Shown piece after piece: positions 1 through 59,312 of a stretch of DNA of 64,000 nucleotides (its first letter is position 1; each line of letters opens with the position of its first letter). A model generated the notes under the pieces. It made no database searches and had not been told where the DNA came from. It saw only the letters and a program-made list of their open reading frames with translations. The position numbers were made by a program, and so were the translations under genes. Origin of the DNA: Chlorokybus atmophyticus (taxonomy: Eukaryota > Plantae > Mesostigma and Chlorokybus algae); the NCBI GenBank assembly GCA_009103225.1, contig RHPI01001037.1, positions 1,670,551-1,734,550 of the forward strand, read 5' to 3'.

Positions 1-254
1 GAATATTGGAATCGTTCCATACTTTGTAATGTGAGATCGTCCGTGCATAAGACTTTTGCTCATTGTATGAAATTATACGCACGACCACGAGTAGCAACTT
101 GCGTACGTTTCACATATACACATGAATAGCCGTATTTAACATTAGGGATGTAGATGTACACTTAACGTCATGCTGTGTATCAGGGTTATGTCAATGCGCT
201 CCGATAAGAGGTAATTGCGTAAATACTTATGACTGCCCTTACAAGTGTCTAATT

Positions 255-760
255 TACGCACACGCACACCCACACATATATGTATACATATTTATGCATA
301 TATATATGTGTATATATATATGTGTGTGTGTATATACATATCTGTATGTTTTTATATGTGTATATGTATATGTATGTGCATATATACACATATATATACA
401 TATACATATACATGTATATGTTTACACCCACCCACATATATATATATATATACATATAGCAGTATATATATATTTATATATATATAAGTATATATATATG
501 TATATCAATGTATATATATGTACATATGTGTATGTGTATATATATACGCATATATATATGTGTATATTTATTTATACATATATATACATACACATATATA
601 TATACATATATATGTATACTACCGTATGCATATACGTATATATATCAATGTATAAATATCTTTATCGTGATGTTTATATACCGTAAAATTAATATACACA
701 TAAATAGTATTTACGAGTATATATACCTTCACATATGAACATAAACTTATATATGTGAAA

Positions 761-799
<39 letters not shown>

Positions 800-960
800 T
801 ACGTGTGTGTATGTGTATATACATAAAGTATATAATTATAGTACATTCATACACATGTATATGTTTATGGTTATAACACATGTACAAATGTGTATATATA
901 TAAGCATATATGTAATCATGTTTATGCTTTACTCAAACAAAAAGTCATTATTGATGTAGA
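255..960. repeat. AT-rich compound microsatellite tract ((TA)n/(TACA)n/(TGTA)n), largely alternating purine-pyrimidine
   Basis: Seen directly: about 700 bp of TATATA/TACATA/TGTGTA units. The Y/I/H/C-rich ORFs 245-846 are translation artefacts of it. Confidence 0.95.
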
Positions 961-1920
961 TATACAGACTGATACAGATTGACAATGCTCTATTTACAAC
1001 ATATGCACAATGAAGACTATATCAGTATCTTATATAATACAATTGCGATAGTGTGATGTTGTGGCTAGTAGCAATAGCCACAACATCATAGCCTATTGGG
1101 TCATTACCACGTGCTCAGTTGTGTTCATGTTGACATGCATGTCTTGCTTGCTTTGTGGCCCCTTCATTCCACAACACGATTTGACTACACAGTAAAGTGG
1201 GACACTGTATTGTGTAGTCCATCGGACAAGCAAGGCTTGCATCATGCAAGTTGCATGTCAACATGTGCCATAAAAGTCTTCACAAGACTCATCAATCAGC
1301 TGGCCTTACAACAAGGCAACAAAGCAAGGACGACACGTGCACAGGTGGTCCTGAATGACCATGCACCTATGCAACGCGCAGTGCTCATTGAGCGCACACC
1401 GTCTTCCTGGAAAACGGTGTGTGCAATGGCAGGGAAGTCTCCTCCCTGCCGCAAGGGACCTGCTTCATCACTCGATAAAGTCTCACTGTCACTCCACGCT
1501 GTGGTATCATTCCTACAACCGGCTACTGTTATCATTGCTAGTCGTCGCCCATAGGTCGAAGGCAAGGCGTGAACTGGCTGTCGTCCGGTCGGTCTCGGCC
1601 AAACATGCTGCCGCCGCGGCACACGAGCAGTGCTACTGCTGCACACTGCGAAGTGCAGACTTGGCGTTGCCGGGCCGGCAAGCGACGGCGTGGCCGCGCA
1701 ATAATTGCGGTCTCGACTGCGTGAGAGAACAGCATTGGATGCTAGTAGCAGCCTGCGAGAGCTGCAGCGGCGGCGGCGACGTGGGCGGCGAGGTGGGAGC
1801 GGAGGTGAGCGGGAGCGTCAGTGGGATAGCGTGGTTGGTGGAAGAGAAGAGCGTGTGACAGGGATGGTGGTGCTGTGAGGAAGGTTTGGGACTACGGGTG
1901 CAGAAGCCTGCTGCTGAGCC

Positions 1921-4900
1921 ATGGCCATGGGTGACCACCACGGGCAGGGTGATTCTGCTTCTGCTTCTGCCCCTGGTCCTGTTCCTGCTCCTCTTCCGCC
2001 TCGTCCGGCTGGTGCAGGCGAAGAGATTGATGGTGACGGTGATGGAGACGGTGTTGGCGACAGCTCCGCCATTACTGCTGAGTATGCGAATATGCACGGG
2101 GCGGAGAAGGATGACAACATGTTTTTCTCGGAAGGCGGGCCAGTGTTCCGGGTGAGACTGGGCTTAGCATGAGCTTTGCTTTGTGCGAGAGGCACTGGCC
2201 GCCAGCTGATCATATGCTTGTCTCCAAGCTGAAGTTTATAGCATATTCAGCTGCATGATAGTGTGCCATCTGCGCTGGTCTTGCATGCCAGCTGCAGTAG
2301 TCTGTTTCCATTGAGCGCCAGTACTTTGCGGGTGTCTCGCAGCCGCAGTCAGTTCTGTGATCGGCTTGTGTTGCATCAGCTGCAATGGCATTCACCCCAT
2401 GAAGCCATTGACAGCTGCCCCCCCCTATGTCTTGCAATGGTTTCAAAACGTGGTGCTGCTCCATTTCAAAGCTTTCCTCACACATGTGCCCGTATGGTTG
2501 CTGCGGCCAGGCCAAGTACGGGTTCCGCGACAGCCGCACTATTACACAGGCGTTCGTAGAAGGGAGGAAGACTGAAATCAGAAACTTTCTCAGCAATCCG
2601 CCAAAGGCGCGAGTCCTGCGCGTGCTGAACGCGTGCTTCCCTTTCACTAGGTGGCTGCCGTACTACAACTGGCAAATCTTTAGTGCGGATCTCCTTGCCG
2701 GCCTCACTGTCGGCTGCATGCTTATCCCTCAGGTGCAACGTCTTGCAGCATATATTTTTCCTCCATACCTCAATGTCAGCATGCCAGCTTACTCTCCAAC
2801 CAATTCCACTCAACAAGCTTTGTCTGTGGGTATTTGCAGAGTATTTCGTACGCTTCCATTGCAGGGTTGCCAGCTCAATATGGACTCTGTAAGTGCCCTT
2901 TGTCTTGTTGTGTGCCTGCAAAAAGTTATGCAGTCTTTAGCAACAGATTGAACACAACTTTACGTAACCGGTACTCTGTGTCAGATTCTGGTTTCTCTGC
3001 TCCTTACATATACGCTCTTATTGGCACGAGTCGACAGTTGGCAGTGGGGCCAGTGGCTCTCATATCTCTTCTGGTCAACGACGCCATTGCTAATCAGGCC
3101 GAGCCACTGTCGCAGCGCGCAATTGAGCTAGCTATCTTCATCACGATGGCCAGTGGGGTCATAGTTTTGGTAATGGGTCTGCTGAAGCTTGGCTTCCTCC
3201 TCAATTTCCTCGGCCAAGCCGTGGTTACGGGGTTCATCTCTGCCACGGCATGCATTATCATTGCACAGCAGGCCGGTAACGCCCTCGGTTACAAGCTCCC
3301 GCGCTCTGAGCTCATTCATCAGAACTTACGCTACATTTTCAGGGACATTGACAAGGTTCGTGGCAGGCACCGCCAGTCACGGCTGTTTGAGCAACGATCA
3401 AGCCGTATTGCGTGCTGCATGGTATGCTGACGCTGGTTTTACTTCAACAGATCAATTGGCCAACCTTCGGGATCTTCCTGTTCTTCTTTTTGTTGCTGCT
3501 GAGTTTCAAGTTCGTGGTAAGTTTCTACTGTGCTATGCTCCCGCAAGAATGGACCCGCGCAATGTTGAACGAGCAGATGGCTGCAAACAACTGCGTCGCT
3601 TATGGATGTTGTTTTCTACGGGAAGGAGTTTCGGATGCTAACAAGTATCCTGTTTTCGCATTGTGGCTATTGTGTTCTGCAGGGAAGGCGTTTCAGGCGC
3701 GCTAAGTATCTTCCTTATGTTGGGCCGCTCCTCTGCATCATCGCCAGCACTCTATTTGTCGTGATCACCAAGGTGAACAACCATGGTGTCAAGGTAGTTG
3801 GTGAGATTCCCAAGGGAGCCCCCCCTTTGTCAACCTCGTACTGGTCTTTGTCCAACCTTGACAATGGACTGTGGCGTCACATCATTATCATTGCCCTCCT
3901 TGGCAACATTGAGTCCATCGTCATTGGCAAGAAGCTCGCCACACAGCACCGCTACGACCTCAGTCACAACCATGAGCTCGTCGGTCTCGGTGCGGCGAAC
4001 GTGTTTGCAGCCATCTTTTCATCATACCCTGTCACTGGTAAGCACCAACGTGGGTTGGTGGATTTACAACTCACTCTGATGTTGCAAAGCATGTTTACAT
4101 GGCTTTTGTGTGCATTGGGCGAGTTAGTGTTGCGTACGTTGTATAGTGCAAGCGATGTGCACGCTGGTGTTTTCCATGTTTTCTTTGCATGACAGTGGTG
4201 TGTATGTTTAGGGTCCTTCTCGCGCTCTGCTGTCAACAATGCAGTTGGGGCCAAGACACAGCTTGCGGGCGTCATTACTGCAACGATGATTTTATTCGTT
4301 ATGCTTTTCCTCACTCCCCTGTTCAAGAAGACCCCACAGGCCGTCCTGGCGGCCATCATCGTCAACGCAGTCATTGGGTTGATTGACTTTCACGAGTGGA
4401 AGTTCTTCTATGAGGTGTCCAAGAGGGATGTGCTCCTGGCTCTGGTGACCTTTGCGCTCACGGCGTTCATGGGGATCGAATGGGGTGTTGGCATGGGCGT
4501 CGGATTGTCGCTGTTGTTTGTGTTGTATGAATCTGGTCATCCTCATACGGCTGTCCTTGGCCGCCTTCCCGGTTCTACAATCTATCGCAACGTTCGCCAG
4601 GTATACTCCACTTGCTCAACAAGTTGCAACACCCAACATCACATTAGGTTGTGGTACGCCTTGCACAGTATGAACAAGTGTACATGTGTGCAGTACCCGG
4701 AGGCGAAGACTCAGGAAGGCATCATTATTGTGCGTATTGATGCGCCCATTTACTTTGCCAATGTGCACTATCTCAAGGACCATATTCACAAATTGGAAAT
4801 TGAGACCGCCAGAGCTGCGGGACATGTGGTGCACGTGGATCAGAACATTTTCAAACGCTACAAGAGGCTTACTGACAACACCAGGCCGGTAGAGCCAACT

Positions 4901-31009: not shown

Positions 31010-32421
31010 ATGGCGGCGGGAGGGGTGGCGATGCACAAGCGCGTGTTCAGGGCCGGCTGCGTCCTGCAGTCCCTGGACGCCACCACGCTGGAGATGCTGG
31101 TGCCTGGGGAAGTCGGACTGGACCAACACGGCAAGGTCAGGCGCCGGGGGGGAGCAACATTGCGTATGTGCGTGCGTGCGTGCTTGTGTGTCAGCATACG
31201 TGTTTGCATGAGTGTGAATAATAACTATACAATGCTCTGGCTGCTTTCTTTGTTTGTACCAGAGCTGTGAGTTGACAAAGGACTGGTGGTGATAGATACG
31301 GTGGTAGCAATGCATGCATGTCTATGTCTCTGGTTGCTGCTAAAGCAGTGTATGTGCACGCATTGTGCATGAAAAACTTCTGCTGTCAGCTGATAGCTAG
31401 CACGGTGGTTACAACTACGTCAAGGTGTCGTCCAGTTCTTACGGCGATGACTGCAATCAGCGCTACTTTATTGCATTTGCACACCTTTCAAGGAAAATCT
31501 ACAAGGCAAATGCATGGCGACCAGTGCTGCCAACACCCACCTTCATATATGTTATTACACCAGCCAAGCAGCCATGTCCAGCATGGTCAGAGCATGCATT
31601 CTATTCTGCCATATAATGTAATACAATACCCACTCATCTCACTCTGTAAGCACCCGTGTCCGTCATAGTAGCACACAGCTTCATATCTTCTTGTCCCAAA
31701 GGTGGAGTATTGCAGACTGGCATCGGGTGGAAAGAGACTCATTGCCACGCCGGACGGCGTGCGTGAGAGTGCGAGTGATGAAGCTGATGAAATGCATGTT
31801 GGCCTGCCGAAAGACGGGGATGTCGATGTCGATGTCGAGGAGCTTGGGGAGGGGACGATGCTGATGCCGGGGTTTGTGGACTTGCATGCGCACGCACCGC
31901 AATACAAGGTGAGGGTGGATGTTTGGCCTCGATGAGAGACATATGCAGACACGCACGCATGCACCCGCACACGCATGCGCGTACACACACACAGGCACGC
32001 ACACATGCATGCACGCATGAACCTGTGCGGAAACAAAACCACATTCGCGAGCACGCGTAGGCGCCTGCCTGGACACACACAATCATGTGTGCTCTTTCTG
32101 CACGCATGTCCGTGACACACACACGCACGCACACGCACACGCACACGCACACACACACGCACACGCACACGCACCTCTCCCTAGTTTGCAGGCAGCGGCA
32201 ACGACTTGCCTCTCCTGGACTGGCTCAAGACCTACACTTTCCCGACCGAGGCCAAGTTCAGTAACTCAGATTACGCCCGTACCGTCTACGACAAGGCCGT
32301 GCGACGCCACCTGTCGTTCGGGTCGACGACGGTTGTGTATTTTGCGTCGCTGCATGTGGAGGCGACGATCGTGCTGGCGGATGTGGTGGAGAAGTATGGA
32401 CAGAGGGGGTTTGTGGGAAAG

Positions 32422-32452
<31 letters not shown>

Positions 32453-34298
32453 TGCGCACGTGCTCGTGTCTGGGTGTGGGTGTGGGTGTGGGTGTGGGTG
32501 TGGGTGTGGGTGCGCGCGTGACTGTGCTGGCGTGCGTGCGTGTGTGCGTGTGCTTGTGCACGCACACCCACCCACACACCACACAATCCTTGTATCAGGT
32601 CTGCATGGATCGCAACAGCGAGCCTTACTACGTCGAGTCCGAGGAGGAGTCCGTGCGCGGGACGCTGGAAGTGGCTGAGAACATTCTGGCGAGGAACAAC
32701 CCTCTGGTCACACCCATCATAACACCAAGGCAAGTGGACAAGTTAGTCGTGTGGTAGTACAACATGTTGATGTGTGTGTGTATGTGTGTGTGGTGCAGGT
32801 TTGTGCCGAGCTGTTCGGCCGGACTCATGCAGAAGCTGGCGGACATCGCGGCTAAGCTGGATATCCCCGTGCAGAGCCACCTGTGCGAGAACAAGAGCGA
32901 GATAGCGTGGGTTCGGGACCTGCACCCCGAAGAGGTGTGAGTGCATTTGCGTGAGCTCGTGTGCTTTTGTGCATACCTGTGCGTGTGTGCAAACATGTGT
33001 GTATGTTTGAGCCTGTGTTAATGTGTACACAAGTGCATGTACGTGCAAACCTGTGCGTGCGTGTATGCGTGCGTGGGTACGTGCGAATGCGCTCATGTGC
33101 ATCCGTGCGTGTGTAGCTGCATTTCCCAATCTAGCGAGGGATCTCTCATGCAATATCTCAGGACACGTACACGGGAGTGTACGACCGTTACGGTCTGCTG
33201 AGCGCGCGCGCGTGCGTGATGGCGCACGGCGTGCACCTCACTCCCGGCGAGCGGCGCGTGCTGGCCGAGCGCGGGACGGGCATCGCGCACTGCCCCATAT
33301 CGAATTTCAACCTGCGAAGCGGAGTGTGCGACGTGAAGCAGCTCATGCGTGATGGCGTCAAGGTGTGTGCGGTTGTGTATGTGTGTGTGTGTGCGTGTTT
33401 GCAAGTTTTGTATACACACATGCTCGTATGTACCGTGGCAGTACCACAAGCGCACGCCCACGTGCACACGAGTTGGCACACGCACGCACGTACGACCGGT
33501 GTGTGTGTGTTGATTGCTGATGTGGTATTATTGGTTGTGTAGGTGGGTTTGGGGTCTGATGTGGCCGGCGGGCACCACCCTTCCATGCTGGAAGTCATGC
33601 GCGCGGCCATTGCCGCCGCGAATGTCCTCACCTTTGATCAACCACAAGTGGTGAAGCCTGTAAGTGCTGTTGCATAACTGCTTTCAACAACACCATCAGC
33701 ACACTGCCACTTGCATGGAAACCCAACATCGCCATGTGCAAGTTACATATGTATTGTTCTATACAAACACTGTCACCACGACATCTCTGTTAGATGTAGA
33801 ACATTACAGAGCCATAAAATACGCCCCGCACACGACATTGACAGGATAGAACTTTGTGTTTTCTGCTGTCATGCTGCATATGGCAGAGCTGGCAGCGTAA
33901 CACGAGATCGAACACTTAGGTCAAGCAAGCTTTTTGTCAGTAATGTCACTGCAACGTCGCATGTATGAATCCACTAAACGGCTGATACAATGTGTGCGTA
34001 TCAACAAACTTGTCCCCCGTCGCAGCCTATGTCAATTCCGGAAGTGTTCTATTTGGCTACTTTGGGCGGGGCGCGCGTGATGGATATCGACGGCACAGTC
34101 GGCAACTTCGCCGTCGGGAAGCAGTTTGACGCGCTGGTTGTTGATATCGGCTCCGACAACGGCCCCTTTGACGTGTTCGACGACGACAGCCACTTTGATA
34201 TCCTGTCCAAGTTCATCCATCTGGGAGATGACAGAAATATTAAGCGGGCGTACGTTGCTGGCAAACAGATTGTGCCGATGCAACAACATTCATTGTGA
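31010..34298 (+). CDS. GDA: Guanine deaminase (amidohydrolase superfamily, EC 3.5.4.3), 8 exons
   Basis: PGFVDLHAHAPQY (HxH), DLPLLDWLKTYTFPTEAKF, GQRGFVGKVCMDRN, ITPRFVPSC, QSHLCEN, MAHGVHL, IAHCPISNFNLRSG, VGLGSDVAGG, YLATLGGA, GNFAVGKQFDALVV, LGDDRNI. Stop at 34298. Confidence 0.95.
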
Positions 34299-34717: not shown

Positions 34718-37700
34718 TCACTTCTTTCTATTGTCAGGAGTAGGCGGCGAAGAGTACGGGAACGGGTTGCTGAACGGTACGGGATAGCAGAGTGTCTCTG
34801 CGTGATACTCGCCTTGCCCGTGTCCACCCTGAATGCATAGTTTGTCCTCCTCGCCCTCCACGCCCGACACAACAACTGCGGCATGTTCGAACCGGAAAGG
34901 TGACGTGTCCGACGAGGGCGCCTGAGTCCACGTGTTGGTGTTGGTGTCGTATTGCCACATGTCGTTGTACTCCTGCTTGAGACTGGACCCGCCGTGAATG
35001 TAGATGTATGAGCCGTACGCGACGGAGGCGTGGCTGTAGCGGCCAACATAGTTGTTGTTGTTGTTGTTGTTGTTGTTGTCGTCGGAGGAGAGTTGGAAGG
35101 TGTTGAGTTGCGTGAGCACGTTGTCGGCGGGGTTGTACGAGAAGAACTCGTTGGAGAAGCCGCGATCGGTGTACCCGCCGTAGATGTACACAACATCATT
35201 GGCCGACACAGCAATGCTGTGGCCAAAGCGCTTGCCCGCAACAGTGCCATCGACAGACGTGGGTGTAACAGACCGCCACTTGCGTGTGTCGATACTATAA
35301 ACCCACATGTCGTCGTAGAGAGCGTGTCCCGAGCGCCCACCGTACACTATCATCGTCCCATCCGACAACACACCCGCAGCGTGGTCGAAGCGTGCGGGTG
35401 GTACGCCTCCATCACCCTGCGGGCTGATGAATCGCCACGAAGAGGACGTGAAGGAGAACTCCCACACGTCGCTGAAGGCGTACGCGCTACGCTCACCGCC
35501 ATACACGTACATGGCGTCGTTGTACACGACAGCGGAGTGAGAGTAGCGAGGAGGGGGAGACACGCCGTCCTGAGGGGACACTTGCGACCACATGCGTTCA
35601 GGAACCCAATTCACTTGCGTGTCCTCGCCGTCGGCAGCGGGCTCAATCACAGCTCCCACTGTCGCGGGATGAACCTATACATCAAGGTAGAGGTTTCAGC
35701 ACGAGAGTTGTGTTGGGTGCACACGTGTAATGAACTCACTCACAAGGAGCATGCAAAGGTGCACATGAGCCCGCGCACGCAAGCTCGCACGCTCGCACGC
35801 GTACGATTGTGCACGCACATATGTCCACACGTACACATACCACTCTGGGTGTGCAATGTGTTTACCTTGATGACGGTGATGTCATCCCAGAATGCGTGTG
35901 CTGGGAGTACGTTGGGTACGCCCGTGAGGTCATCCAGTCCCGCTATGCCAGCAGAGATGAAGATCTTGTTGATGACAATAGGGTTGGGATCGCTATACAC
36001 GGGTACCCCATCAATTGACACAGTCGTGCCGGTTGAGTCACTGCGGACCTCAAACAGATGCCAGCCAGCGTTACGCGTCGCATTGTAAGCCGACTCCCAT
36101 GGCGACGCCGTGGCATATTTCCCAACAGTAGACAGCGTGTACACGCCGACAGCCGTGCTCTGCGTGTCGGGAAGGAGCCCAACATGCGTGTCGGGGAGAA
36201 GAAGTCTCTCCCCATCAGGTGTGCCTCCACACACATCCCAATCAGGACTGATGAAGTGGGCTGCTGTCTCAGAGTCAGAATCATAGAACTGAGCCCGAAG
36301 GATGAAGCTATCCGTCGGGTCATCGATATCAGCCTGAAGAGCACCAGCGAAGCCATACTTGGCATGAAGACTGTATCGGCCTGCATAAGGCAACTCCTCG
36401 CTGATATCAAACCCGTCAGCTGAGGGCGATATCACCCCGCAGGGAGCCGCGGGGACGAAAGGAGTCGAGGTGATATCGCCCTCGCCCTCGAAATCTTCGT
36501 AGAAAGCGAAGACGGTCTCGGGCTTGGATTCGGATATCACTGCGGGGTTGCCATAGAACATCTCGAGTGAGAATGACGTTGGGAGCACGTTGTCACCCGG
36601 GATGGAGACCCAGAATACGGTCTCGGGCTTGCCGCAGGTCCAGCTGTCGACAACGTGGTCGAGGATGGTTGATTGACCAGTGACACGGAAGACGATATCC
36701 GTGCATGCGCCTGACATTGAACCGCTAGCGACAAGCGACTCGGTGTCGAGCACAACTTGCAGCGTGGCGTCACCATCCAGTAGAGCATTGACTGTAGTAA
36801 CAACAACAAGAACACATCAGGGGTGAAGAGCAGTGTCGGTAACGCGTGTGCGTGTGCATGTGTGTGTCTACATGTGTTTGCGCGTATGTGTGTACTTACG
36901 TGTCACGCTGATGAGCTTGCGGTACGATAGGCTGTCATCAGCACCGCCGGAAGCACCTTCCAGCATCCACATATCATTGAGGTACGTCTTGTCATACAGG
37001 GCGCCGCCGAAGATGTAAATGCTGCCGTTGTATGCCGCAGCCGTGTGCTCGAAGCGCTTCGCTTGCAGCGGGAGCGTCTCATCATCTGTGAGAAGCTCAG
37101 CCCAACGTGCGGGAAGCACCTGTAGTGTGCTTTGAGGCGTGCTCAATAGTGAGATAAATAGGTTGTAAGGTCCTGGTGTCGGGGCCGTGTACACCACTTG
37201 GTACGCGCCCTGGCCGATAGACACCACCTCGGGGACCACCACGACGTTGTCCACGAGCATGTGGTTGATTGTGATCGCGCGGGTCACGTCATAGCTCGCA
37301 TCGCGGTCGACAATCACGTTGGCGTGCGGATCCATGGAGTCCTTTGCTACAACGATGAAAGAGGAGGGGACCCCGGCCACGGCCGTCGGGACCTGCCCAC
37401 CAACAAGGTCCAGACTAGCAAGGTCCCCGGCAGTAACCTCCAACGTAAAAGGTGCGGGGACAAGAGGCTCGTCGGGACGCGTGCCATCACCCAACAGAAG
37501 GACATTGAGAAGGTAGCTCCCGGCTTCATCCAGGTGGTATGTTGCCAACCAGAGGTCACCTAAGCAAGATGTGTCGCCCGGACCAAAGCGATGGTCACTA
37601 ACAAAGAGCCCATTGGGGAGCTCGAGGCTCAGAAGCTTGCGGAAGGGACCCTCTGGATCGGTGATGTTGGGTGTGTCGGACGGTGCGCCATCTATGTTGG

Positions 37701-40700
37701 GCACGCTCCCATAGCATTGGTCCTGTTCTGGGCAGTTGATGGCGGGCTCGTGTTGGACAGTGTCCTGCTTGTGGAGGATGGGGTACTCCACGGCGTCATG
37801 TGTGTCCTGGAAGTACTGCAAATCAAAGCGCGTGGTCTCGACGGCAAAGCGAGCCTCGCGACCAAGGTAGCAGTACTTGCACTCGTCCTTGGCCTGGATG
37901 AGAACATACTGGCCGAGGGACCCGGAGTACGCCCTCGAGTTGGTCAAACCACGGCCCGATGCCACGCTGAAGCGTGCACTCGGGGCTCCAACACCTTGGT
38001 TACGGAAGTCACCCTCCACGGGTGCAAAGGACCCGAGACCTCCCAACCATGAAGGTGGCCCGAGCGGTGCATTGAATGGGTCCAAGTCACCTTGGAGACA
38101 ATTGTTGTTGGAGTTGTCACCGACCCAACAATCGGCAGAGTAGCCCTTGGCGATGTCGCCCTGTCCTTCATTGAAAGGCCAGTAGCCGGCAATCTTGTCG
38201 AGCTCCATGTAAGGTGGGCAGTGCATCGTGTCGATGATCTCCTGTTGGGTGCGAGCCACCTTCCAGAGCTTGGCCTCGTCGATCATGCCCGTGAAGGCGT
38301 AGCCGATGTCAAGCGGGGCTTGCAGGTTGTTGGGTGGGATGCGCTTGGCGACATCATAGGACTTGGATGTAATCTCAACACCATCTTGATAGAGTGTGAA
38401 GCTGGTCTGGTTGTAGACCGCTGCAATGTGTGTCCATCCACCCGTGAGTTGGAATGGTGCACTCACTCTTCGCCACTCGCCATTGCCGGCGTACACGGTG
38501 GCCATCAGCGTGTCATAAGTCGGGGAGAACTTGAGGTCGTAGCTACGCGTGTCCACGCCAGCCTTATCCTGATCGTTCTTGTTGAACACGTAACGGAAGG
38601 TCGGGTTGATGTAATACGGCGTGCCCACATTGGCCAACAACCGCCTCCTTCCTGACTGCTCAGGTGGGGGCGGGGAGGGTGGAGGTGGCACGGGAGGGGG
38701 AGGTGAGGGTGGAGGTGGGCGTGGGGGCGGGGGGGGGGGGGGTGAGGGAGGAGGAGGAGAGGGTGTTACGCCACGCGGGCTCACCCAAGCCTCCATTGTG
38801 AAACCTGATGTGGTCAGACCCAACAGGCGCGTGTCCTCAACCTCCACGCTGGTCTGCCCGTTGAAGAAGAGGGACGTGCCAGCTGCCAAACACAATCAAC
38901 ACACATGAGACAACATATACACACCCGGTAAGTGATGACACTTTATCATTGGGCACATACCTGAAACTTCGACGCAGACGCCGTCAAGGAATGCTGCGGG
39001 GCCCTCAGTGGTGTTGATGGTGGCTGTGAGGACATAAGTGCCCATGACCTGTGGCGTGTAGGTGACAGTGTACGTGCCGTCTTCGTTGTCAACAACGTCG
39101 GCGACAATGTCGTGAGGACCCGTCAACGTGACCGTCACATTGTCGCCACCAGTAAACCTTAGACAACCGCTGTCATCCTTGGCTTGCACCTGTGAGGTTA
39201 CAACAAGCGCGTCAAAGGTAGGTACAACTACTTACAGTATGACTGTTGCCAGAGGCAATGATGCACTTACAGTGAATGAGCTCATGACACCGGCAGGGTT
39301 TGCATCTGAGACATTGGTCAGCGGGACGGTAGTGTTGGCAGAGGAAGGTCCGGCCATCACAAGTGTGACAAAGGATGCAGCGAGTTCATCATCCATGGTG
39401 ACGTTGACATTGTAGGGTCCGCATTGGCCGGGGACAGGCTGCACGGCGACGAGGTATGTGCCATCGTCCATGTCCACAACTTCAGCATCCACGGTGATGG
39501 AGTCATTGGCAGCAACCAAGACTTGGACTTGAAAGTTGTCGCCACCAGTGAGACGGCGAGCAAAACACTTGGTGCGTGCGGTGATTGAGAACACGCCAAC
39601 CCCATCAATGTCAATAGACTCCACGCCGGGTCCCACGAGCTCGGTTGCGTGAGGATCAGTTGAGTCATCATAAGAGATGTTGGCCCACAACTTATCTGCA
39701 CCCATGAGTGGCATAGCATCGCTCGTGTGGAAGTCCGCATAATCTGATGCAGCCGGACCCGTGCCTTCGCTCATGCTCCAAGCATGTGTGACATAATCAG
39801 ATCTAATAGGTGCGACTGCGCTGCTCTTAGGGCGAACCCACCCGAACCGGCTGAGTCTGTTGGGACACCTCACGCGATCCTTCATCACATATGGTGGCGT
39901 GAAGCCCGCTGTGGCAAACTCAACAGCAAAGTCCTCTGGCAGAGCCGACAGGTCCACGTCGTTGATGTTTCTACGCATGCCTTCATCCGTAATGGCCACG
40001 CCGGTGATGAGACCGTTGAAGCGGTTGGTCTCGCCCTCGGTGGAGTCTTGACCGATAAGAATTGGGACATCGGCTGCGAGGATGATGTCACGGGGGATGT
40101 CAACAAACACTTGCTTGTCCTTGAGGATGCCATCGATGTAGAAGAACATTGATACGCCGGTGGGACTGGGAACATACGTGGCCGCCACGTGCTGCCACCT
40201 GCCCTCGAGAACAGTTGCACGCCATGAGACCACCTCGCGGTACACCTCACAGGGCTCGCAGTCGCAACCAACCAACACCGCCAAATAAAGGCGGTCGTCC
40301 TTGATGCCAAAGGAAACAGAGACCAATCCATCTGAACAGAAGGTCATTCACAGAGTCAGTCATTACATGCTGTGATCAAACACATGTACCATTCACACAA
40401 CATGCACTAGGACCCATTAGTACCTGCATATGGTCTGGAGAGAATGGCCTGAGGTCCTTCCGTGCTGTAAGCGTAGATCCAGGCTTCGAGTGTAAAGCTG
40501 TCGGCCGCAAATGAGGCTGGACTGAAAACTGTGGCATTGGCGTCACGTGTGAAGTCGAGAGCGTACTCGCTAGTGAAGTACTGCGCCGTGAGCTCGCCCT
40601 CGGACAGAGCACGCGAGTAAACCCAAACCTCATCAACACGCCCATTCACCTGTCAATGGCGAGTAGCGACTTAGATCTGATTCAGAATGTGTGGGCAAGT

Positions 40701-43700
40701 CATGCATGACGGTTTTGCCAACATACCGCAGAGAGTATGGTTCCCTGCAGCAGGAACTCAGTGAATCCGGCGCCGATGAACTCCAGGATCGAGGCATCTG
40801 TGGAGTTCATAGCATTCTTTCCGTTGATGTAGACAGCGCCAGAGCCATCAGAGTACGTGCCCGCGATGTGCTTGTAGCAGCCAATGTGGGCACCCTGCAG
40901 CATCTGCAAAACATCCTCCTGCACAGATGAAAGATGTAAACAAGTATCTTACAATGAACTGGCCCAATGCATCCGAGGGACTTACTGTTGAGGCACTTAC
41001 CGACTGCTCATAGTCGACGCGGACCCACATGGAGATGGTGAAGTCCATGAAGGCCTCCGAGTCTTGAGACAGGTATGAAGCCGGCACGGGGAGAGTCAAG
41101 TTGGCACCACCCGTAAATGGACCAACAAGGACAGCTCCATTGTCAATAGCATTGCGATCCTGGGTAGAACAACAACCTCAATGTTAGGTGCCTGCTGCTT
41201 GGCAACATAATCTTAAGAGTGACAGTAAGCACTACTCTACCTCAACAAGTTGAGCAAGGCCATTGTCGCCGAGGACGTATATGCCGTGGCGGTCATTGCC
41301 GGAGGAGTCCGTAATGGTCATGACGTTGTTGTCGGCAAAGTTGGAGTCGGGCACGAAGTTGAATGTGTAATGGGCTTCGAGTCCTCGGTTGAGGTCAGTC
41401 ACGGAGGGCTGCACGAAGAACTGCGCTGGGAAGTCCTCCGGGATGTTGCTGACGTCCACATTGGGTGAGTTGGTGGCGAAGACTTGTCCCGGACCGAATG
41501 CGTCACCTTGAGGTGGCTGCGTGACGGTGAACACGTTGTTGCCGTGTGTCAACGGGCCCTCGGCGGGTGCTTGGACCCCGTTAAACACCGCTCCGAGCCA
41601 CTTTGTGGATGCAAGGTTGGTCGCTATTACGCTTACTTCCTGCCCGCCGGCAACATCGCCCACATCAGGGATGACCGCAAGCGTGTTGGGTGGGAGCCAA
41701 GGCGCCGCAGATTGAACGAAGTCCACATTGACTGCTGTCAAGACAGCTGCTGGGTCCGAGGCCAACGAGGCCACCTTGTTGTCATCATCCAAGCTTGTGA
41801 ACTTGTAATAAGCAGCAAGGCCTTCCTCATCACCCTGCAGGGACCCTCCCCAAGTATACTGAGCCACTTCATCTGAGGTGAGGGACTTGTTGAACACCAT
41901 CACTTCGTCAACGAGACCCGCGAAGAACTCGGAGGGGGCAGCCAGGTCAGAATTGCGGTAGTCCTGGCAGATGCTGAAGATACCCGTGATGTTGGGCTTG
42001 CTCGTCGTCGTGAAGCGGCTGGCAAGCTCGCCATCAACGTAGAACTGGCCCTCGCCCTCGCTGTCGATGCTAACAAACACGTGGTGCCATTGGTTGGGTA
42101 GAGCTGGAGGTCCCGTCTGTTACACACAGCCATGTCAGTGTCTGCAACTTTGGACTGGAGGCCCATATCATGCATACAAGTACACAGCAAACATGTGTAC
42201 CCGTGTGACATCAAGGATGGCATCGTCGTAGTAGAAGAAGCGGTGGCCGTCGTACATGACGAGGGCAGAGTTCTTGCCATTGTTGCTCTCAAATGACAAA
42301 ACAGTCGACACGGGCTCAACATCGCCCGAGCGGACTGCCCGGATGAGACCGCGCTTGTCACCCTAAGGGCATACAAGGAATAAGAACATGCTCATAGCTT
42401 GAGCGTATGACAACAACAACATCAACAACATACCTTTGAAAGGAGTGACCTGCGACGAACTGGCATCTCTTCTGCGGGTGCAGGCATGTCATAAGGCATG
42501 ACCCATGCACCAAAGGCATATCCATCTCCATTCAACAGGGCGTTGACCTCCGAGTCAACCGCAGTCATGTAGGAGTTGTCGCCACTGCACTCAAGCGCAG
42601 CCTGGAGCACAAACACATTCCGTGAGTCATGTGTGTGTCACAAAATGCTCTGTAACTGTGCATGCATGAGACATACTCCTCATGCACCGTTATGCCACTC
42701 GCCTCAGTAATCTCATAGACCATTGGGTTGGCGGTCAGAGGCGTGGCGCCAAAGAACAGCACCATTGGTTGGGCAGATGTGGGTGTGTTGCAGGTGAGCT
42801 CGCGTCCGTCGGGGTTTGTTGCGTTTGCGTCTGTCCTGAAGACTGCGGTCATGTTGTATGTTGCCAGTGACAGTTTTGTGCCACACGTGGGGTCAGATAT
42901 GCTCCCCGGCAACATATGCTGCATGGAGTCTCCCACAATCACGCCATCGGCACATTGCTCGGGATACCACCCTGGTTGGTTCTCCTGTTTCATGCAAAAC
43001 TGAGTAAGATGGCAGAGCGTTGCAACACAACTCCTGCGTGTATGCATGTGCTGGTTTCTACCTCGCAGATGGTGAAGTCTTGAACCACTTCCTTTACGCC
43101 CCATGTGCATGAGAGCCAAGGCGAGGGCGCAAAGTTGAAGCCCGCAATGTCCAGAGTCTCTCCACCCGTCAGCTTGCTCTTTGGTATGCTTTGGATTTCC
43201 TGTTGACATATGCGACAACACGTTCAACACAACCATCACCTACTCCATCTCCACTTCCTCCGGCAGCATGTTACCTCATAGTTCACGCCGTTAATGGTGT
43301 AGATCCAGCTAGGGTGCCACGGGACGGGTGTGAACTTGTAGTTCAATGTGCCTGTGGATGAGGTGACTGCCTGGCCATCTGGTGTACTGTCATCAACGTT
43401 CTCGCTGAAGCGGAGGTAAGCCAACACTTGGAGTTCTTCCCACATGGGTGATAGAGGAGAGGTCCACGCAGTGGAAGCCAACACGTCATCGTCGACCAAC
43501 ACGTTGAACCAACGCAACTCGTCAACCAGACCGGTGAAGTTGCCGGTTTTGAGGGTGACAACACCTGCATTGAGTGGCGTATGAGTTGATGAAGTTTACT
43601 GATTGGTATACTACAGTAAAGTACAACCGTACTCACCTTTCAAGTTGGTTGTTGCGCTGCTCTGGTACATGACAACACCGTCGACGTACAGGGTGGCAAC

Positions 43701-46700
43701 ACCTCCCACGGAGAGTGCGACGTAATGCCACTCGTTCACGCTCGACACATTTGCAGCATTGTACTGCTGACTGCAACCACAATGCAGCAGTTCTTCATAT
43801 GAGCACCATCAACGTTGAACCCAGCAGCAACAGCAACAGCAACACCACCACCACCAACAACAACATAAACAACATACCTGTCAAAGTTGGGTGAGTTCAC
43901 CACAAACTTGCCATAGTAGTACTGCACACTCTGTGTCGTGCCTGTTGTGCCACTAATCTTGAACAGTGTCTGCTCATCCTCGTCATTGTTGGGTTGCACC
44001 CACATTCCAACAGTCATTCCATCCCCAAGTATGCCTCCCACAACCACAGACACCTCCTCATCGCCAGTCAGCTCCAACACCTCCTCCATAAAGGTTTGCT
44101 TCTCGCCGGGGATGCCAACAAGCCCGTCGTTGGAAGCAGCAAAGAACATCTGCTCGGTTGCAAAAGGAGCGGGAGGAGATGCACAGGTGATGGAAGTCCA
44201 GCCACCGTAAATGTAGGTGGCTGAGCGAGAAGTCTGAAGGTTGCTCATGAAGTGGCCCTGTACACACAACAACGAGTCAAGCAGTGTTGTGTGTGTGTGT
44301 GTGTCAAGCAGTGTGTCACATGCATTGTTGTGACATGTATCTTACTGTTGCAGTGATGGCAGCTGAAACGTCATCCTGGCTGATGATGTTCCCGTTTGCG
44401 TTGGCGACCTCTGCAGGACCGAGTGACCCGACTGTGGTGTACACCCAATGGAATGGGTTGGCGAGGGCAAAGTACTTCTGGTTGGGTTGGGTGAAGTACT
44501 GATCGTAGTAACGGGGAGGTTCGTTGGACATGCGCGGGGTGTAGGGCATGTTGGTGCGGGCGTTGTCGTCAGCAAAGAGACCGCATGACAAGAAAGGGCT
44601 GCGAGCGAAGCCGACACCCGTGAACGTAACCATGTTGGACTCGCCGACGGGGTAAGCGTCCGAGTCGGGTGAAGGATGAGTTACAACCAACGGCGGGGCG
44701 AAGGGTGCGCCCGTGTAGGCATATCGCGAGTGGGAGGGGAAGGATCCCGCTGTACAGGACAACAAACAACTTCAGTAACATGATGCACTCAACTATCATC
44801 ACCTTCATTGGCTCTACTCACGTGCAAAGTAGATGTAGTCGTTGTCGAGGTCGAGGGTAGCGGTGGCGTTCTTGGCGTGGTTGCGCATGCCCGCAGTGTA
44901 GCCGGCCTTATCGGTAACATACAAGGAAACCGCAGGCACGTTGACGGGGTAGCTGGCCGAGCGGTCAAAAGCTGGCTCCTCCATCTACACATAATCACAC
45001 TCACACTCACACTCACACTCAAAATTACAGTCACAATCACAATCACGAATGCCAATGATGCATACCTGTAGGAGACGGCGGCGGCCTCCACCTTCATCAG
45101 CAGGTGGTGGAGGAGATGGAGGAGGAGGAGGTGGAGGAGAGGGTGCAGGGCCAGGTGGAGGTGGGCTAGGAGGCGGGGGGCTCGGTACCGCCGCTGCAAT
45201 GCCACAAGTGTTGGTGAATGTTGGGTTAGAGTTGTGTCACAAGACCAGAGTGCCTGCATACCAACCATCTTACCAGCGAGGCCTTCCTGGCACGGGTTGT
45301 TGAAGCGTGCCCACAACACGCGGCCGGCCGTGTAGTCGAGCTGTTCCCCGCGCGGGGCCTCGAGCTCGCGGGACGGGAGTGAAAGAGGCATCTTGAACAT
45401 GATGTCCTGTACACAAGACAACACGTCAGTCTCATGCAAGACAGTGTGGATGAGTGTATCAAGACCTCCTCCTTACGTGGAGCTCTGGCAGTGGGACGAA
45501 GCGGTTGTACACCACGACTTCATCAATGAACCCGTCGAAGGTCAGGAGGGTCCCGTCAGAGCACTGCATGCCAATCTTGAAGCTACAGCACATATTGGGA
45601 TCGCCGACAGCAACATCATCGGTGTCCACAAAGCCATCCATGCGCATGTGGTCGTCTGATCCATCCTCAGCATCTGCAGGGTTTCCATCACCAGAATCCC
45701 CACCGTCTGAGCCATCCTCATTATCATCTTGGAGAAGCCTGCAAGGATGTGTCATACCATCATGTTGGGATGTGATACAAGTGAGGTGGTTGAGAGATTG
45801 CCATGGTGATGTGTGTTTACCTTCGTCGGCCTCCACCTTCTTCAGGTGGAGGCGGTGCTGATGGAGGGGGTGGCTGGGCAATTGTGCACTTGATCGGGTA
45901 CATACCCGTGTCAAACTCAGCAACAACTTGGCCGTCAACTGCAAAGAGCCATGATACACAATTAAGCCACACATACGTACGCATCATGTCCTCATTGTCT
46001 CACGTCGTGAGAGTGAAACAGCAGACCCCATCGACTCACCTGCCAGGTTGCCGTGTCCCTCGCCGTCGATGGCCACCATGGCGTGGTGCCACATGTAGTC
46101 CTCGTACGTGCAGTTGGAGTACCACGTGTCGGTTCCATCAGTGAAACCAAACTGCTTGTTGGCAGTCTGCCAGATGAGAGCCATCTTGCATTCATACCTG
46201 ACCAACACCTATAACACACAAGTGGGATGGTCAGTATGACCCACACATACACACGTACACGCAAGGAGAGGATGTGTGTATCTCTACCTGATCTTCAGAG
46301 ACTGGTCTGTCTGTGATCTTCAATTGCACGCAGTAGAACGGCGTGGCTGTGATGAGGTACTGATCGAATGCATAAAAGCACACTTGTGATATGGCGGGGC
46401 GTGTGTCGAGTGCGGGATCCGCTGTTCCCGGCCACGTGAACGTGCGTGTGCCTCGCTCGCCAAGGGAGTTGTTGGGTGGGGTGAGGGACACGTACGTGTC
46501 GAGGAAAGCGCCCTCGGGGAGACCCGTCGTCTCGATGATAAGCATCGTACAGTCGTCGGTGTCCTCGGCGATCACATCGAAGTCGAAGTCCTCGCCGCGG
46601 TAATGTGTCAGCGTGGGCACGTTGTACTGCACAACACCAGAGGCGACATCAGATTAGACAGCCTTGAGGCAGGAGTTGACTGGTGCATCTGCGTGTACTT

Positions 46701-49700
46701 GCGTGTGGGTGTGCGTGTGCTTGTGCTTGTGCGTGTGTGCATAGCACGCGTGCGCGTTCGAGCACATACGCACACTCACATGCCTGACACAAAACACACG
46801 TATACGCGTGTCTGTTACAATAGAATGTCACCACACCTGGGAGAGGTCCAGAGCGGCAAACCAGTTCTCCACTCCCGGGTTCTTGTTTGGGTCGCCCGTT
46901 CGAATGAATGTGGGTAGGGTGTTGCCCTGGCAGGCAGAGGCCACAGGGACAACGCTGTTGCCCGACGTCTGTCCGCAGGTGGCATTGCCCGTACCAAGGT
47001 TGAGCGGGTCAGGTGTACACATCGTGAAGTCACCGTCACCGAGGCCGCAGATGGTACACTCTTGGTTACCGTAAGTACCATCAACATCTGCGTGTAAACA
47101 CAAGGTCAGTATGGGACAACAACAACAACAACAACAATTACTACTACTACTACTACTGCTTACTGTTGAAGGTTGGGGTTCCGGCGATGTTGTTCTTGCA
47201 GTTGTGGTTGCAGAAGTTGAGGTTGCCGTCATATAGGTAGAGCATGAAGTCGAGCGGCACCTTCACTTTGCTGTCGCGGACCATCACCACCATGTTGTAC
47301 AGTCCACCACGCAGCTTCGTGCCCGGACCCGTCGTCCACGTCTGCACACAACAAGCGTCACAACCCACACGCAAACCCGACACAATATTGCCACATACAC
47401 ACATACACTCATCTCCCAACCTGCCAGACGACGAGTCCGGGTACTTTAGCGCTCGGGTCGAACGAGTTGCTCGTCTGCGGCGTTTGTTGCGGCGTTCGAT
47501 CGTTGGGACACGCATTATCAGGTTGGCCATCTCCGTTCCTATCCTGCGTGTACATGTTGGAGTTGCAGTCGAAGTTGCCGTAGTACTGGTTCTTGTTGAA
47601 CACGCCGTCGGCCCTCGAACGCATGATGCCGCCCATCTCCATCTGATCTCCGAAGGTGAACTGCAGGTTGCGGTTGTCGACGGGGTCGAGGTCGTAAGCC
47701 GCGATCTGGAACTTGGCGTAGTTGGGGTACGACACGTGCATCACGGGCATCACGGGGATCTGGGAGGCGATCGGGGAACGGTTGCCGTCGCCAGTCACCG
47801 AAACTGTGATCTCCAACCTGAATCGTCCCTGTAATACAGTACTTTGCTTTTACTACAAGCGTCACACCCTTCTCAATACAGTGTTTGATGTACTTGAGGA
47901 GTTTGTGTGTGTGCGTGCGCGCAAGTTATACACACACACGCGCACGCACATACATACGCGTGTGTACATGCGTGCACGTGCGTGTCCGTTTGTGTACCTG
48001 GGCGTTGTTGTTTAGCCAGTAGTCTAACTCGGAGGGACACACGCCTGGGTTGGTGTTCCATGGCACGCTGCACTCGTATATGCGATCTCCACCGGTGTAG
48101 AAGGCTGTGTACACTGGCGCGCCTGACCCCGGGTAATTGGTTGGAAGCGCCGTCTGCGGCCTATTCATAACCGAGCCTTTAGCACATATTGTGGCAAACT
48201 TGCACGACAAAAGCAAGTGTGAGGGTGTTATCTCCTTACGTGTAGGTTTTGACCCAACGCGACACGCCTCGCACATAGTTGCCGGTAATGAGGTTGCTGC
48301 TGGCATCCACTGTGTCGAGTTGAAGGATGACATTGTCCGCCAAGCCGTCACCATAGAAGAACCCGTACACCTATGCAAAGCATAATGTTGTTCATTGCAA
48401 TTGTAATGTAAATGTAACTGTTGTACACTATCACAGTATGTGTGCGTGTCTGTGTGTGTCTGTTTACCTGAGACCAGGGCGCGCACAAGTTCTTGTTTGT
48501 GGCGTACGCGGTGTTGCTGCTCCCGCAGTCTGCTGGCAGCGTGCCGGACGGCCCCGGATAATCGCAGTAGAAGGGTGTTGGGCACTCCTTCACAATGGTA
48601 TTATCCTGCAGACAAACAACAATCCAACCATGAGCATGCCGAACACAGACACACACACGTGCTTGCACATACACGCACCCACACATACATATACCCCCCC
48701 CCCCCCNTTAGGGTTTTACCCCCCCTTACTGCTGACTGCCTCTTGCTCATTGTTGACCTTACCCGATTAAACATATGCGTTTTCCCCTCTCCTTTGTGTG
48801 CTCCTCTATGCAGCTTCCCATTTCCGCTACGGCACCATCAGTTGGATCCCCTTGCAAGGCCCCAACGCCGACGGCTCCTTCTCCGTCCAGTTCACCTTCC
48901 GCGCCGCCTTCCGTCGCAACTACGAGTGGGGCAAGTGGTTCCGGGAGCAGTGGCAGATCACTTCCTCATCCACCTACCCGGACCCATACCCCCCCACCCC
49001 CCCACCCCACCCCCACTTACCGAGTACACGCTATACGGGAACTTCACATAGAAATATTGTTGCTGCGGCACGATGGTCGGCGCAATATTCTGGCACCCCG
49101 CTCCATTACTCGCTAGCGTTGACCCAGCTGGACACGTGAAGCACCCCGCTTGATTCGGGTTGGTCGCACAGTTACTCGGCACAGTCCTCCAGAACGTCTC
49201 CGTCCCATGCCAGTTGAGTTGGGTGTTTGGGTCCGGGTAGGTGGATGAGGAAGTGATCTGCCACTGCTCCCGGAACCACTTGCCCCACTCGTAGTTGCGA
49301 CGGAAGGCGGCGCGGAAGGTGAACTGGACGGAGAAGGAGCCGTCGGCGTTGGGGCCTTGCAAGGGGATCCAACTGATGGTGCCGTAGCGGAAATGGGAAG
49401 CTGCATAGAGGAGCACACAAAGGAGAGGGGAAAACGCATATGTTTAATCGGGTAAGGTCAACAATGAGCAAGAGGCAGTCAGCAGTAAGGGGGGGTAAAA
49501 CCCTAAAACCTTCCCTACTTGGCCCCCCTGCGCTGCTTTCCCAACTGGTTCCAACTTAATTTTGTAATGCAAGACCGAGGCTTGCTTGCCCCCAGCCACT
49601 GGCTGCTATGCCACAGCAAGCTGCTACTGACAAGTTTTATGCAACATGTGCATGTATTGCTGGTCTGTCGTGTTAGTAACTAGAGTTGTTTCATGCTGTG

Positions 49701-49879
49701 ATGGCTTGCAGCTGTCTGCTCTCCCCCCTCCCCNNNNNNNNNNNNNNNNNNNNNNNNNNNNNNNNNNNNNNNNNNNNNNGGGGGGGGGGGCAATGCACGT
49801 AATGCACGTACGCACCTGCGGCAAGTTGTAAGAAGGCTAGAAGCAGCAGCCCCAGAAGCTGCCTCAGTGGGGCCGCCAT
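34718..49879 (-). CDS. Giant secreted multidomain protein (~3,800 aa, ~31 exons): signal peptide, Sib-like N-terminal module, Ig-like domain, ~6 LamG/ConA-like domains, IPT/TIG-like and filamin-type Ig repeats, Kelch propeller with DUF2341-like insert
   Basis: Exon 1 49879-49816 MAAPLRQLLGLLLLAFLQLAA with GT donor. Exon 2 49400-49021 ASHFRYGTISW. LamG motifs FTMEAWV/WTHIAAVY/FTGMIDEAKLW and FTLEAWIY/WQHVAATY/FNG. Filamin motifs VQAKDDSGCLRFTGGD...DNEDGTYTVTYTP. Kelch motifs RYSHSAVVYNDAMYVYGG...W. Long open exons 38883-36900, 36782-35867, 35685-34718. No C-terminal transmembrane helix seen. Confidence 0.85.
48708..49506. repeat. 279-bp inverted duplication (arms 48708-48986 and 49228-49506) copying the exon-2 acceptor region of the giant gene
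   Basis: The arms are exact reverse complements as far as I can read, and the ORF track shows the same peptide ASHFRYGTISW... on both strands. The left arm starts right after an N at 48707. Confidence 0.92.
49734..49779. other. Assembly gap (46 N) flanked by poly-C and poly-G runs, inside intron 1 of the giant gene
   Basis: Seen directly. Confidence 0.97.

Positions 49880-50973: not shown

Positions 50974-59312
<8,339 letters not shown>

Follow-up and report, generated by a model that had tools for sequence, protein, structure and literature searches.

The Dictyostelium adhesion receptors SibA-E carry an N-terminal SIBA-E_N domain, and their defining features are a VWA domain, a transmembrane helix and a cytosolic tail. 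Attractin and MEGF8 are extracellular Kelch proteins, in which a six-bladed propeller of the ATRN/LZTR1 type is combined with lectin-type modules. DUF2341 placed beside LamG is a bacterial and archaeal arrangement, and filamin, TIG and Kelch domains also occur N-terminally in outer-arm dynein heavy chains. Motifs of the SP3-7 type are found in extensins and other hydroxyproline-rich glycoproteins. In the pro-region of plant type I pectin methylesterases, RRLL/RKLL is a subtilase processing motif (PMC13477033). In this work, we analysed 64,000 nucleotides of Chlorokybus atmophyticus (the window; contig RHPI01001037.1 of assembly GCA_009103225.1, positions 1,670,551 to 1,734,550) and describe a gene on its minus strand (ATG 49879-49877, stop TGA 34720-34718), whose product resembles several of these systems in part. 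We consider it reasonably probable that this is a single expressed gene of an old green family, encoding a secreted, acidic and anchorless putative glycoprotein of ~420 kDa that serves the cell covering as a multivalent cross-linker or as an adhesin.

The likeness to the Sib receptors lies in the N-terminus of the family: of 17 members, 7 matched SIBA-E_N (PF24907; best 5.5e-9), directly behind the signal peptide. However, the Chlorokybus protein gave no VWA hit in any Pfam piece and has no hydrophobic segment after the signal peptide. With attractin and MEGF8 it shares the secretory pathway, the type of propeller and the lectin-type modules, but Pfam searches with overlapping pieces found no CUB, EGF, PSI, C-type lectin or laminin-EGF domain, there is no anchor, and the propeller is interrupted by an insert. 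Giant LamG-repeat proteins (2,000-7,800 aa; P0003-P0013 and others) also have tandem Laminin_G_3 domains, at ~30% identity, but the similarity is limited to single LamG domains, and these proteins have neither the shared domain order nor the Sib-type head or the Kelch propeller. Such matches are probably bacterial, the only one with a source name being a Verrucomicrobiales protein from a metagenome-assembled genome (P0148). In contrast to extensins, the Chlorokybus protein is a giant whose proline tracts are short and are inserted into its globular lectin-type domains or separate them.

The locus is one real expressed gene. Its coding sequence of 11,592 nt is interrupted by 31 introns (median 81 nt), all with GT-AG ends except for one GC-AG intron. 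Assembled contigs from three runs of one study were compared with 6 kb of the window (42050-48049), and the locus was present only in run X1, whose contigs splice out 14 introns between 42117 and 47420, with minus-strand ends, the GC-AG intron among them, and keep a single frame throughout. Run X1 is presumed to be RNA, since spliced joints are what mRNA gives. The independent model of the Joint Genome Institute (JGI), Chlat1 Chrsp29S04595 (P0158; 3,807 aa), which a word-based search retrieved, is also a single gene and is 98.3% identical to ours over its whole length. Together with the in-frame splicing, the end-to-end alignment of a Mesostigma protein and the colinearity of those from Pyramimonas and Chloropicon, this indicates one gene.

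The gene model was obtained with a splice-aware dynamic program trained on large Pfam-positive exons. The first ab initio version was wrong at six junctions, with parts of the proline-rich exons omitted, a false 29-nt exon and the GC-AG intron missed, and was mended with the contig joints. Contig arithmetic and sequence inspection placed intron 17 at 43877-43771, the start of exon 6 at 47828 and the end of exon 11 at 45821, the last giving GGGRRR|LLQ across the intron. Chrsp29S04595 differs from this model in three places: it lacks 15 aa (VCPSELDYWLNNNAQ) at about 47998-48042, it carries 5 extra residues at about 42602-42717 through the missing GC-AG intron, and it lacks 46 aa ahead of DUF2341, at about 36792-36929. 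All three were decided in favor of the new model by alignment to the Mesostigma, Pyramimonas and Chloropicon proteins and one metagenomic orthologue. The X1 contigs depart from the window at 12 single bases, five of which are packed into 93 nt of exon 21 (42808-42900); this cluster could be a strain polymorphism, a contig stretch derived from a paralogue or a local assembly error.

The first intron contains an assembly gap, and the run of N lies between its donor (CAG|GTGCGT at 49816/49815) and its acceptor (49401/49400). Seven relatives with an intact N-terminus were compared (two from Mesostigma, one each from Pyramimonas and Cymbomonas, and three of metagenomic origin). In all of them and in the Chlorokybus protein, S/T-H/R-FRYGT comes immediately after the signal peptide, the Chlorokybus junction reading …LAAA|SHFRYGTISW. 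Since the signal peptide abuts this motif here as in the relatives, sequence comparison indicates that no exon or other coding sequence is hidden in the gap, which is harmless and leaves the predicted coding sequence untouched. The gap is bordered (49721-49791) by a C-rich stretch at one end and by 11 consecutive G at the other, and its cause is probably a homopolymer that sequencing could not cross.

The signal peptide has a hydrophobic region of 14-15 residues and small residues at -1 and -3. Its sequence differs among the same eight proteins, and its position is conserved. In a 19-residue hydropathy scan of the whole protein, only the signal peptide exceeded 1.6, save one marginal window within LamG-4, and no transmembrane segment or glycosylphosphatidylinositol (GPI)-type tail was found. 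The C-terminus is hydrophilic (…PPTPDNRKK) and lies 17 residues past Kelch blade 6, and the orthologues stop at the same point beyond the last blade. The mass of the protein is 419 kDa, its isoelectric point (pI) is 4.37, and there are 25 N-X-S/T sites and 61 cysteines, many of them invariant among the relatives. These data support the prediction of a secreted, anchorless and very acidic protein.

The domain order largely follows what the original prediction had proposed from the exons, namely a giant protein of about 3,800 aa with a signal peptide and without a transmembrane or GPI end, a Sib-like module, an Ig-like domain, about six LamG domains interleaved with IPT/TIG-like domains, about four filamin repeats and, as part of a Kelch propeller, a DUF2341-like insert. 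The gene model and the hydropathy scan bear out the size, the signal peptide and the missing anchor; the Ig-like domain is supported by its structural match, the LamG series by the recovery of six LamG and three IPT/TIG-like domains, and the propeller with its insert by the structural model. The Sib-like start holds for the family better than for the Chlorokybus protein itself, in which SIBA-E_N scored 18.5 bits against a cut-off of 28.1, a weak match at profile positions 1-29 alone. Three filamin repeats are certain; the putative fourth, the conserved beta region, gave no Pfam or PDB match. It had also been considered unusual to find filamin and Kelch domains in a secreted protein. This was overstated as regards Kelch, since extracellular Kelch propellers such as those of attractin and MEGF8 are known; the best Pfam Kelch model for the propeller is that of attractin/LZTR1, with MEGF8 as a distant match.

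Pfam alone gave five Laminin_G_3 domains, three filamin repeats, DUF2341 and Kelch, and profile-profile comparison added the sixth LamG and two TIG-like domains. In the 5' half, Pfam searches of single exons were blank because introns split the domains, and in LamG-0 a Pro/acidic insert of 85 residues hides the domain from Pfam. The five LamG domains (PF13385) scored 34-94 bits against a cut-off of 27.6; the first two filamin repeats (PF00630) together reached 72.1 bits, and the third 26.9 bits, exactly the cut-off. For IPT/TIG, domain 3 is matched to plexin-A4, and the other two copies rest on internal hhalign comparisons (97% and 90%). Among the PDB profile searches the segment 1745-1905 alone matched IPT domains, and those with residues 662-1000, 995-1200, 1325-1560, 2800-3045 and 3205-3512 returned no significant match; Pfam was likewise blank on the orthologue segments of both TIG-like regions and of 2800-3045. 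The N-module was modeled with AlphaFold2 as a string of beta-sandwiches (pLDDT 68, pTM 0.71). Searches with residues 23-527 yielded no named fold: only generic Ig/cadherin strings were matched in the PDB, unnamed rotifer proteins in the ESM Atlas (best TM 0.47), and unnamed Bacteroidota clusters with a faint He_PIG lead in a language-model search.

The C-terminal propeller carries the signature of the family. Its AlphaFold2 model (residues 3150-3807, pLDDT 74.5) superposes on the Kelch domain of LZTR1 with a VIA Z of 39.5 and a root-mean-square deviation (rmsd) of 2.1 over 297 of 315 residues. As this alignment runs across model residues 5-641, blade 1 is set apart from blades 2-6 by an insert of ~300 residues in the JGI model, or ~350 in the new one. 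DUF2341 (PF10102; 41 bits against a cut-off of 23.4) occupies the same position in 10 of 10 orthologues, and the jelly roll that follows resembles LamG-1 (hhalign 65%, E 6e-5). According to the model, the family signature is a six-bladed Kelch propeller with a DUF2341 and jelly-roll insert after blade 1. A galactose-oxidase-type copper enzyme was considered and is unlikely, given the six blades of the propeller and the fact that Kelch domains of the LZTR1, KLHDC and KLHL types make up its 50 best structural matches.

Of nine SP(3-7) motifs in the protein, eight are concentrated in two tracts. There are also four RR(R/S)LL motifs, where 0.02 would be expected; none of 5000 shuffles reached four. 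Three of the four close a proline tract. At site 1, RR..L is found at the homologous place in 9 of 10 orthologues, even those without the proline tract, so that the basic motif seems to be the older, constrained element. The proline tract of LamG-5 is shared with Mesostigma only. The motifs are located in inserts or linkers of a secretory protein and fit the R-X-hydrophobic-L type of S1P/subtilase substrates. The S1P site in the Lassa glycoprotein precursor is RRLL. Processing of Lassa GP-C by S1P has been reported (PMC2685025). The motifs thus look like candidate cleavage sites for an S1P-type subtilase.

An exhaustive HMMER search with a 660-aa exon found two full-length relatives, and the set was extended by word-based searches, which scored only candidates sharing most words. 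Mesostigma viride Mv15517 (P0002; 3,956 aa) aligns in one high-scoring segment pair, 6-3844 against 8-3956, and Pyramimonas sp. CCMP2087 CAMPEP_0198199736 (P0153; 3,957 aa) and Chloropicon primus HOP50_04g31050 (P0170; 3,414 aa) are full-length and colinear. Several marine metagenome clusters also hold full-length colinear orthologues, Chloropicon-like marine relatives being abundant, and the Tetraselmis relative is a fragment or a partial model. The gene is one of at least three Chlorokybus paralogues, Chrsp115S00763 (P0001) being another. This paralogue and the three named orthologues have the same domain order from the signal peptide and SHFRYGT to Kelch/DUF2341, with 30-50% identity over the full length; they differ from the Chlorokybus protein in their variable proline tracts, and all are functionally uncharacterised. 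A second, older subfamily (P0172, P0177, P0178, P0179) is present in Chlorokybus, Mesostigma, Chara and Cymbomonas. Its proteins reach 5,242 aa and have the Sib-type start and the Kelch/DUF2341 end, plus galactose-lectin and PA14 modules.

In a tree of the C-terminal module, the two recent Chlorokybus paralogues group with Mesostigma (95/94), the chlorophyte copies stand opposite (87/86) and the second subfamily falls outside (100/100). As the gene tree follows the streptophyte/chlorophyte split, it indicates that the family predates this split and was vertically inherited. No named match was obtained in land plants, core chlorophytes or Mamiellophyceae among the candidates scored, and a search from the Chloropicon protein, in which few candidates were scored, returned only Chloropicon-like relatives and no named Mamiellophyceae. 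The original prediction had called the protein undescribed; it already exists as a hypothetical JGI model and has orthologues, and in the literature we found no paper characterising the family.

A role in the extracellular matrix or in adhesion is plausible: the protein is acidic, has a predicted signal peptide and conserved cysteines, and combines lectin-type modules with SPPPP tracts, all of which would fit such a role. A function as cross-linker or adhesin is suggested by the types of module. We propose that the protein would enter the secretory pathway, where the SPPPP tracts may be hydroxylated and glycosylated as in extensins and a Golgi subtilase of the S1P type may cut after the RR(R/S)LL motifs. 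The pieces may remain associated after such cuts, because the motifs are found in linkers or in loops on the surface of LamG domains. Once secreted, the product would be a beads-on-a-string molecule, a multivalent cross-linker or adhesin. Binding would be the task of the Sib-type head, the propeller and six or seven lectin-type LamG modules, and the TIG, filamin and Ig rods would serve as spacers. By binding polysaccharides and glycoproteins of the wall or sheath, it would be retained in the cell covering.

Some points weigh against this proposal and must be taken into account. LamG, Kelch and Ig folds also serve in protein-protein binding, so that "lectin" is a putative function here. The RRxL motif may alternatively be a dibasic site of the kexin type or a binding motif. 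The signal peptide was called by rule and conservation. That run X1 is RNA is a guess, although the spliced joints favor it, and 17 of the 31 introns are supported by splice consensus, reading frame and orthologue colinearity, as the reads covered 6 kb only. Finally, the protein would not be a general wall component, because among the candidates scored no family member from land plants, core chlorophytes or Mamiellophyceae was seen.

A bolder version of the proposal is possible, although we hold it doubtful: the protein could be a polyprotein-like scaffold already present in the first green algae, cut by an S1P-type Golgi protease at conserved RRxL sites in the lectin loops. The resulting lectin, rod and propeller pieces, released or associated non-covalently, would build the covering by means of a Sib-type head shared with amoebae. 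If so, subtilase-controlled matrix assembly, as with plant pectin methylesterases, would be much older than land plants.

A scaffold for scales is another candidate, one that we regard as unlikely. In this case the protein would be associated with body and flagellar scales of the prasinophyte type or with their assembly, as a scaffold in the Golgi lumen or at the surface that binds their acidic 2-keto-sugar polysaccharides, and in Chlorokybus it would serve when scaly zoospores form. Pyramimonas, Cymbomonas and Tetraselmis have scales or a scale-derived theca. Scales are also described in Chlorokybus, Chara and Mesostigma (PMC10762512), so that these six family taxa all make such structures at some stage. 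Among the candidates scored, no member came from land plants or core chlorophytes, which lack scales. Moreover, the Kelch domains of relatives gave weak cross-matches to the NanM type (sialic-acid mutarotase), but these are sub-threshold and typical of cross-matching among Kelch families. Chloropicon primus is a coccoid alga with a wall and is not known to have flagella or scales. Its full-length colinear orthologue, together with the abundance of Chloropicon-like marine relatives, weakens the scale variant of the original prediction, which still fits most taxa of the family. In addition, the transcript contigs came from a presumably vegetative culture.

It is rather improbable that the protein is an extracellular receptor or sensor like attractin or MEGF8, soluble or bound to a partner, which would recognize a protein or a microbe-derived ligand through its Kelch propeller and LamG modules and signal via a separate membrane partner. 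The affinities of the propeller and the N-terminal domain in common with the Sib receptors would agree with this, but the protein has no transmembrane segment and none of the CUB, EGF, PSI and C-type lectin modules, and its huge size, extensin-like tracts and acidic pI better match a structural matrix protein.

The remaining explanations have very little probability. For two or more genes merged by the prediction, or a foreign signal peptide exon joined across the gap, there would be room in the 17 introns without reads, the gap-bearing intron 1 included, but every observed junction holds one frame, the JGI model is single, and colinearity from signal peptide to last Kelch blade is seen with the proteins of Mesostigma, Pyramimonas and Chloropicon. 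A cytosolic or axonemal scaffold, with an N-terminal hydrophobic stretch that is no signal peptide, is hardly credible either: the dynein gamma heavy chain was matched in the PDB through its TIG and Kelch domains, and a Kelch/filamin dynein is among the weak matches, but the conserved position of the signal peptide, the invariant cysteines, the SPPPP tracts and the N-glycosylation sites speak for secretion, and no motor or cytoskeletal domain was seen.

Table 1. Features of the gene in window coordinates; residue numbers follow the JGI model (P0158) unless stated otherwise.
Feature	Coordinates	Strand	Residues	Description and evidence
Whole gene	34718..49879	-		32 exons, 3,863 aa; JGI Chlat1 Chrsp29S04595 corrected at three places
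Exon 1	49816..49879	-		64 nt, encodes only the signal peptide MAAPLRQLLGLLLLAFLQLAA; predicted cleavage before SHFRYGT
Signal peptide			1-22	Rule and orthologue N-termini
Intron 1	49401..49815	-		Contains assembly gap, N 49734-49779
N-module	46924..49398	-	23-542 in new model (23-527 in P0158)	SIBA-E_N-like start, then Cys-rich beta-sandwich domains
Ig-like domain (I-set/cadherin-like)	46309..46923	-	528-662	VIA-align Z 9.5, rmsd 2.3, 101 residues aligned
LamG-0	45323..46302	-	665-880	hhalign 98.9%, E 2e-17 to LamG-2; no Pfam hit
Motif 1, GGGRRRLL	45732-45828	-		In Pro/acidic insert of LamG-0, split by intron 11
Extensin-like tract (SPPPP repeats)	45069..45185	-		Ends in GGGRRRLL (motif 2)
TIG-like domain 1, with insertion	44057..44717	-	about 1005-1195	hhalign 89.5%, E 2e-6 to IPT/TIG profile; no Pfam hit
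LamG-1	43500..44026	-	1206-1321	Pfam Laminin_G_3 5.8e-10
TIG-like domain 2	42590..43445	-	about 1340-1545	hhalign 97.2%, E 3.5e-11
GC-AG intron (the only one)	42602..42702	-		X1 contig joint; misplaced in JGI model
Motif 3, RRRSLL	42440..42457	-		Loop at start of LamG-2
LamG-2	41862..42356	-	1600-1736	Pfam Laminin_G_3 8.9e-18
IPT/TIG domain 3	41415..41702	-	1790-1885	Profile against PDB, plexin-A4 IPT 5.4e-9
LamG-3 and LamG-4	39985..41297	-	1925-2251	Pfam Laminin_G_3 1.5e-26, two stretches
Filamin repeats 1 and 2	38881..39666	-	2358-2566	Pfam Filamin 7e-20, two stretches
LamG-5	38209..38880	-	2567-2790	Pfam 4.5e-16; with 40-residue Pro tract
Motif 4, SGRRRLL	38635-38649	-		End of 40-residue Pro tract of LamG-5
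Conserved beta region, weakly filamin-like	37459..38181	-	2800-3040	hhalign <=11%
Filamin repeat 3	37099..37446	-	3045-3160	Pfam Filamin 7.7e-5 to 8.6e-6
Kelch blade 1	36958..37086	-	3165-3207	Pfam; part of propeller in model
Propeller insert	35642..36957	-		46 aa absent from JGI model, DUF2341 (36481-36711), LamG-like jelly roll
Kelch blades 2-6	34772..35602	-	3514-3790	Pfam 1e-48

As for the surroundings of the gene, a plus-strand gene of the amidohydrolase family is its downstream neighbor, at 33135-33539 and probably also 32185-32754 (Pfam Amidohydro_1, 3.2e-12). On the other side, plus-strand open frames at about 51840-56340 have the hallmarks of a P-type ATPase, with DKTGTLT at ~54.2 kb; they look like a flippase-type ATPase gene, Pfam being blank on single exon pieces. 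A (GA/CT)n microsatellite of ~700-800 bp lies at about 53110-53920, with a single N at 53793 and an extreme GC/AT skew in the composition profile.

What is new in this work is the test of the gap, the corrected gene model, the structural evidence for the insert in the propeller, the LamG and TIG domains that Pfam had missed, the tree with two subfamilies and the link of RRxLL to processing of the S1P/PME type. According to a 2023 review of green-algal extracellular matrices, the protein make-up of walls, sheaths and scales is an open question (PMC10762512). The family described here ties an amoebal adhesion-receptor domain to the green lineage and carries a conserved candidate protease site. 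Its members, giant putative secreted proteins with lectin-type modules that range from Chlorokybus and Mesostigma to Pyramimonas and Chloropicon, are concrete candidates for proteins of the green-algal cell covering.

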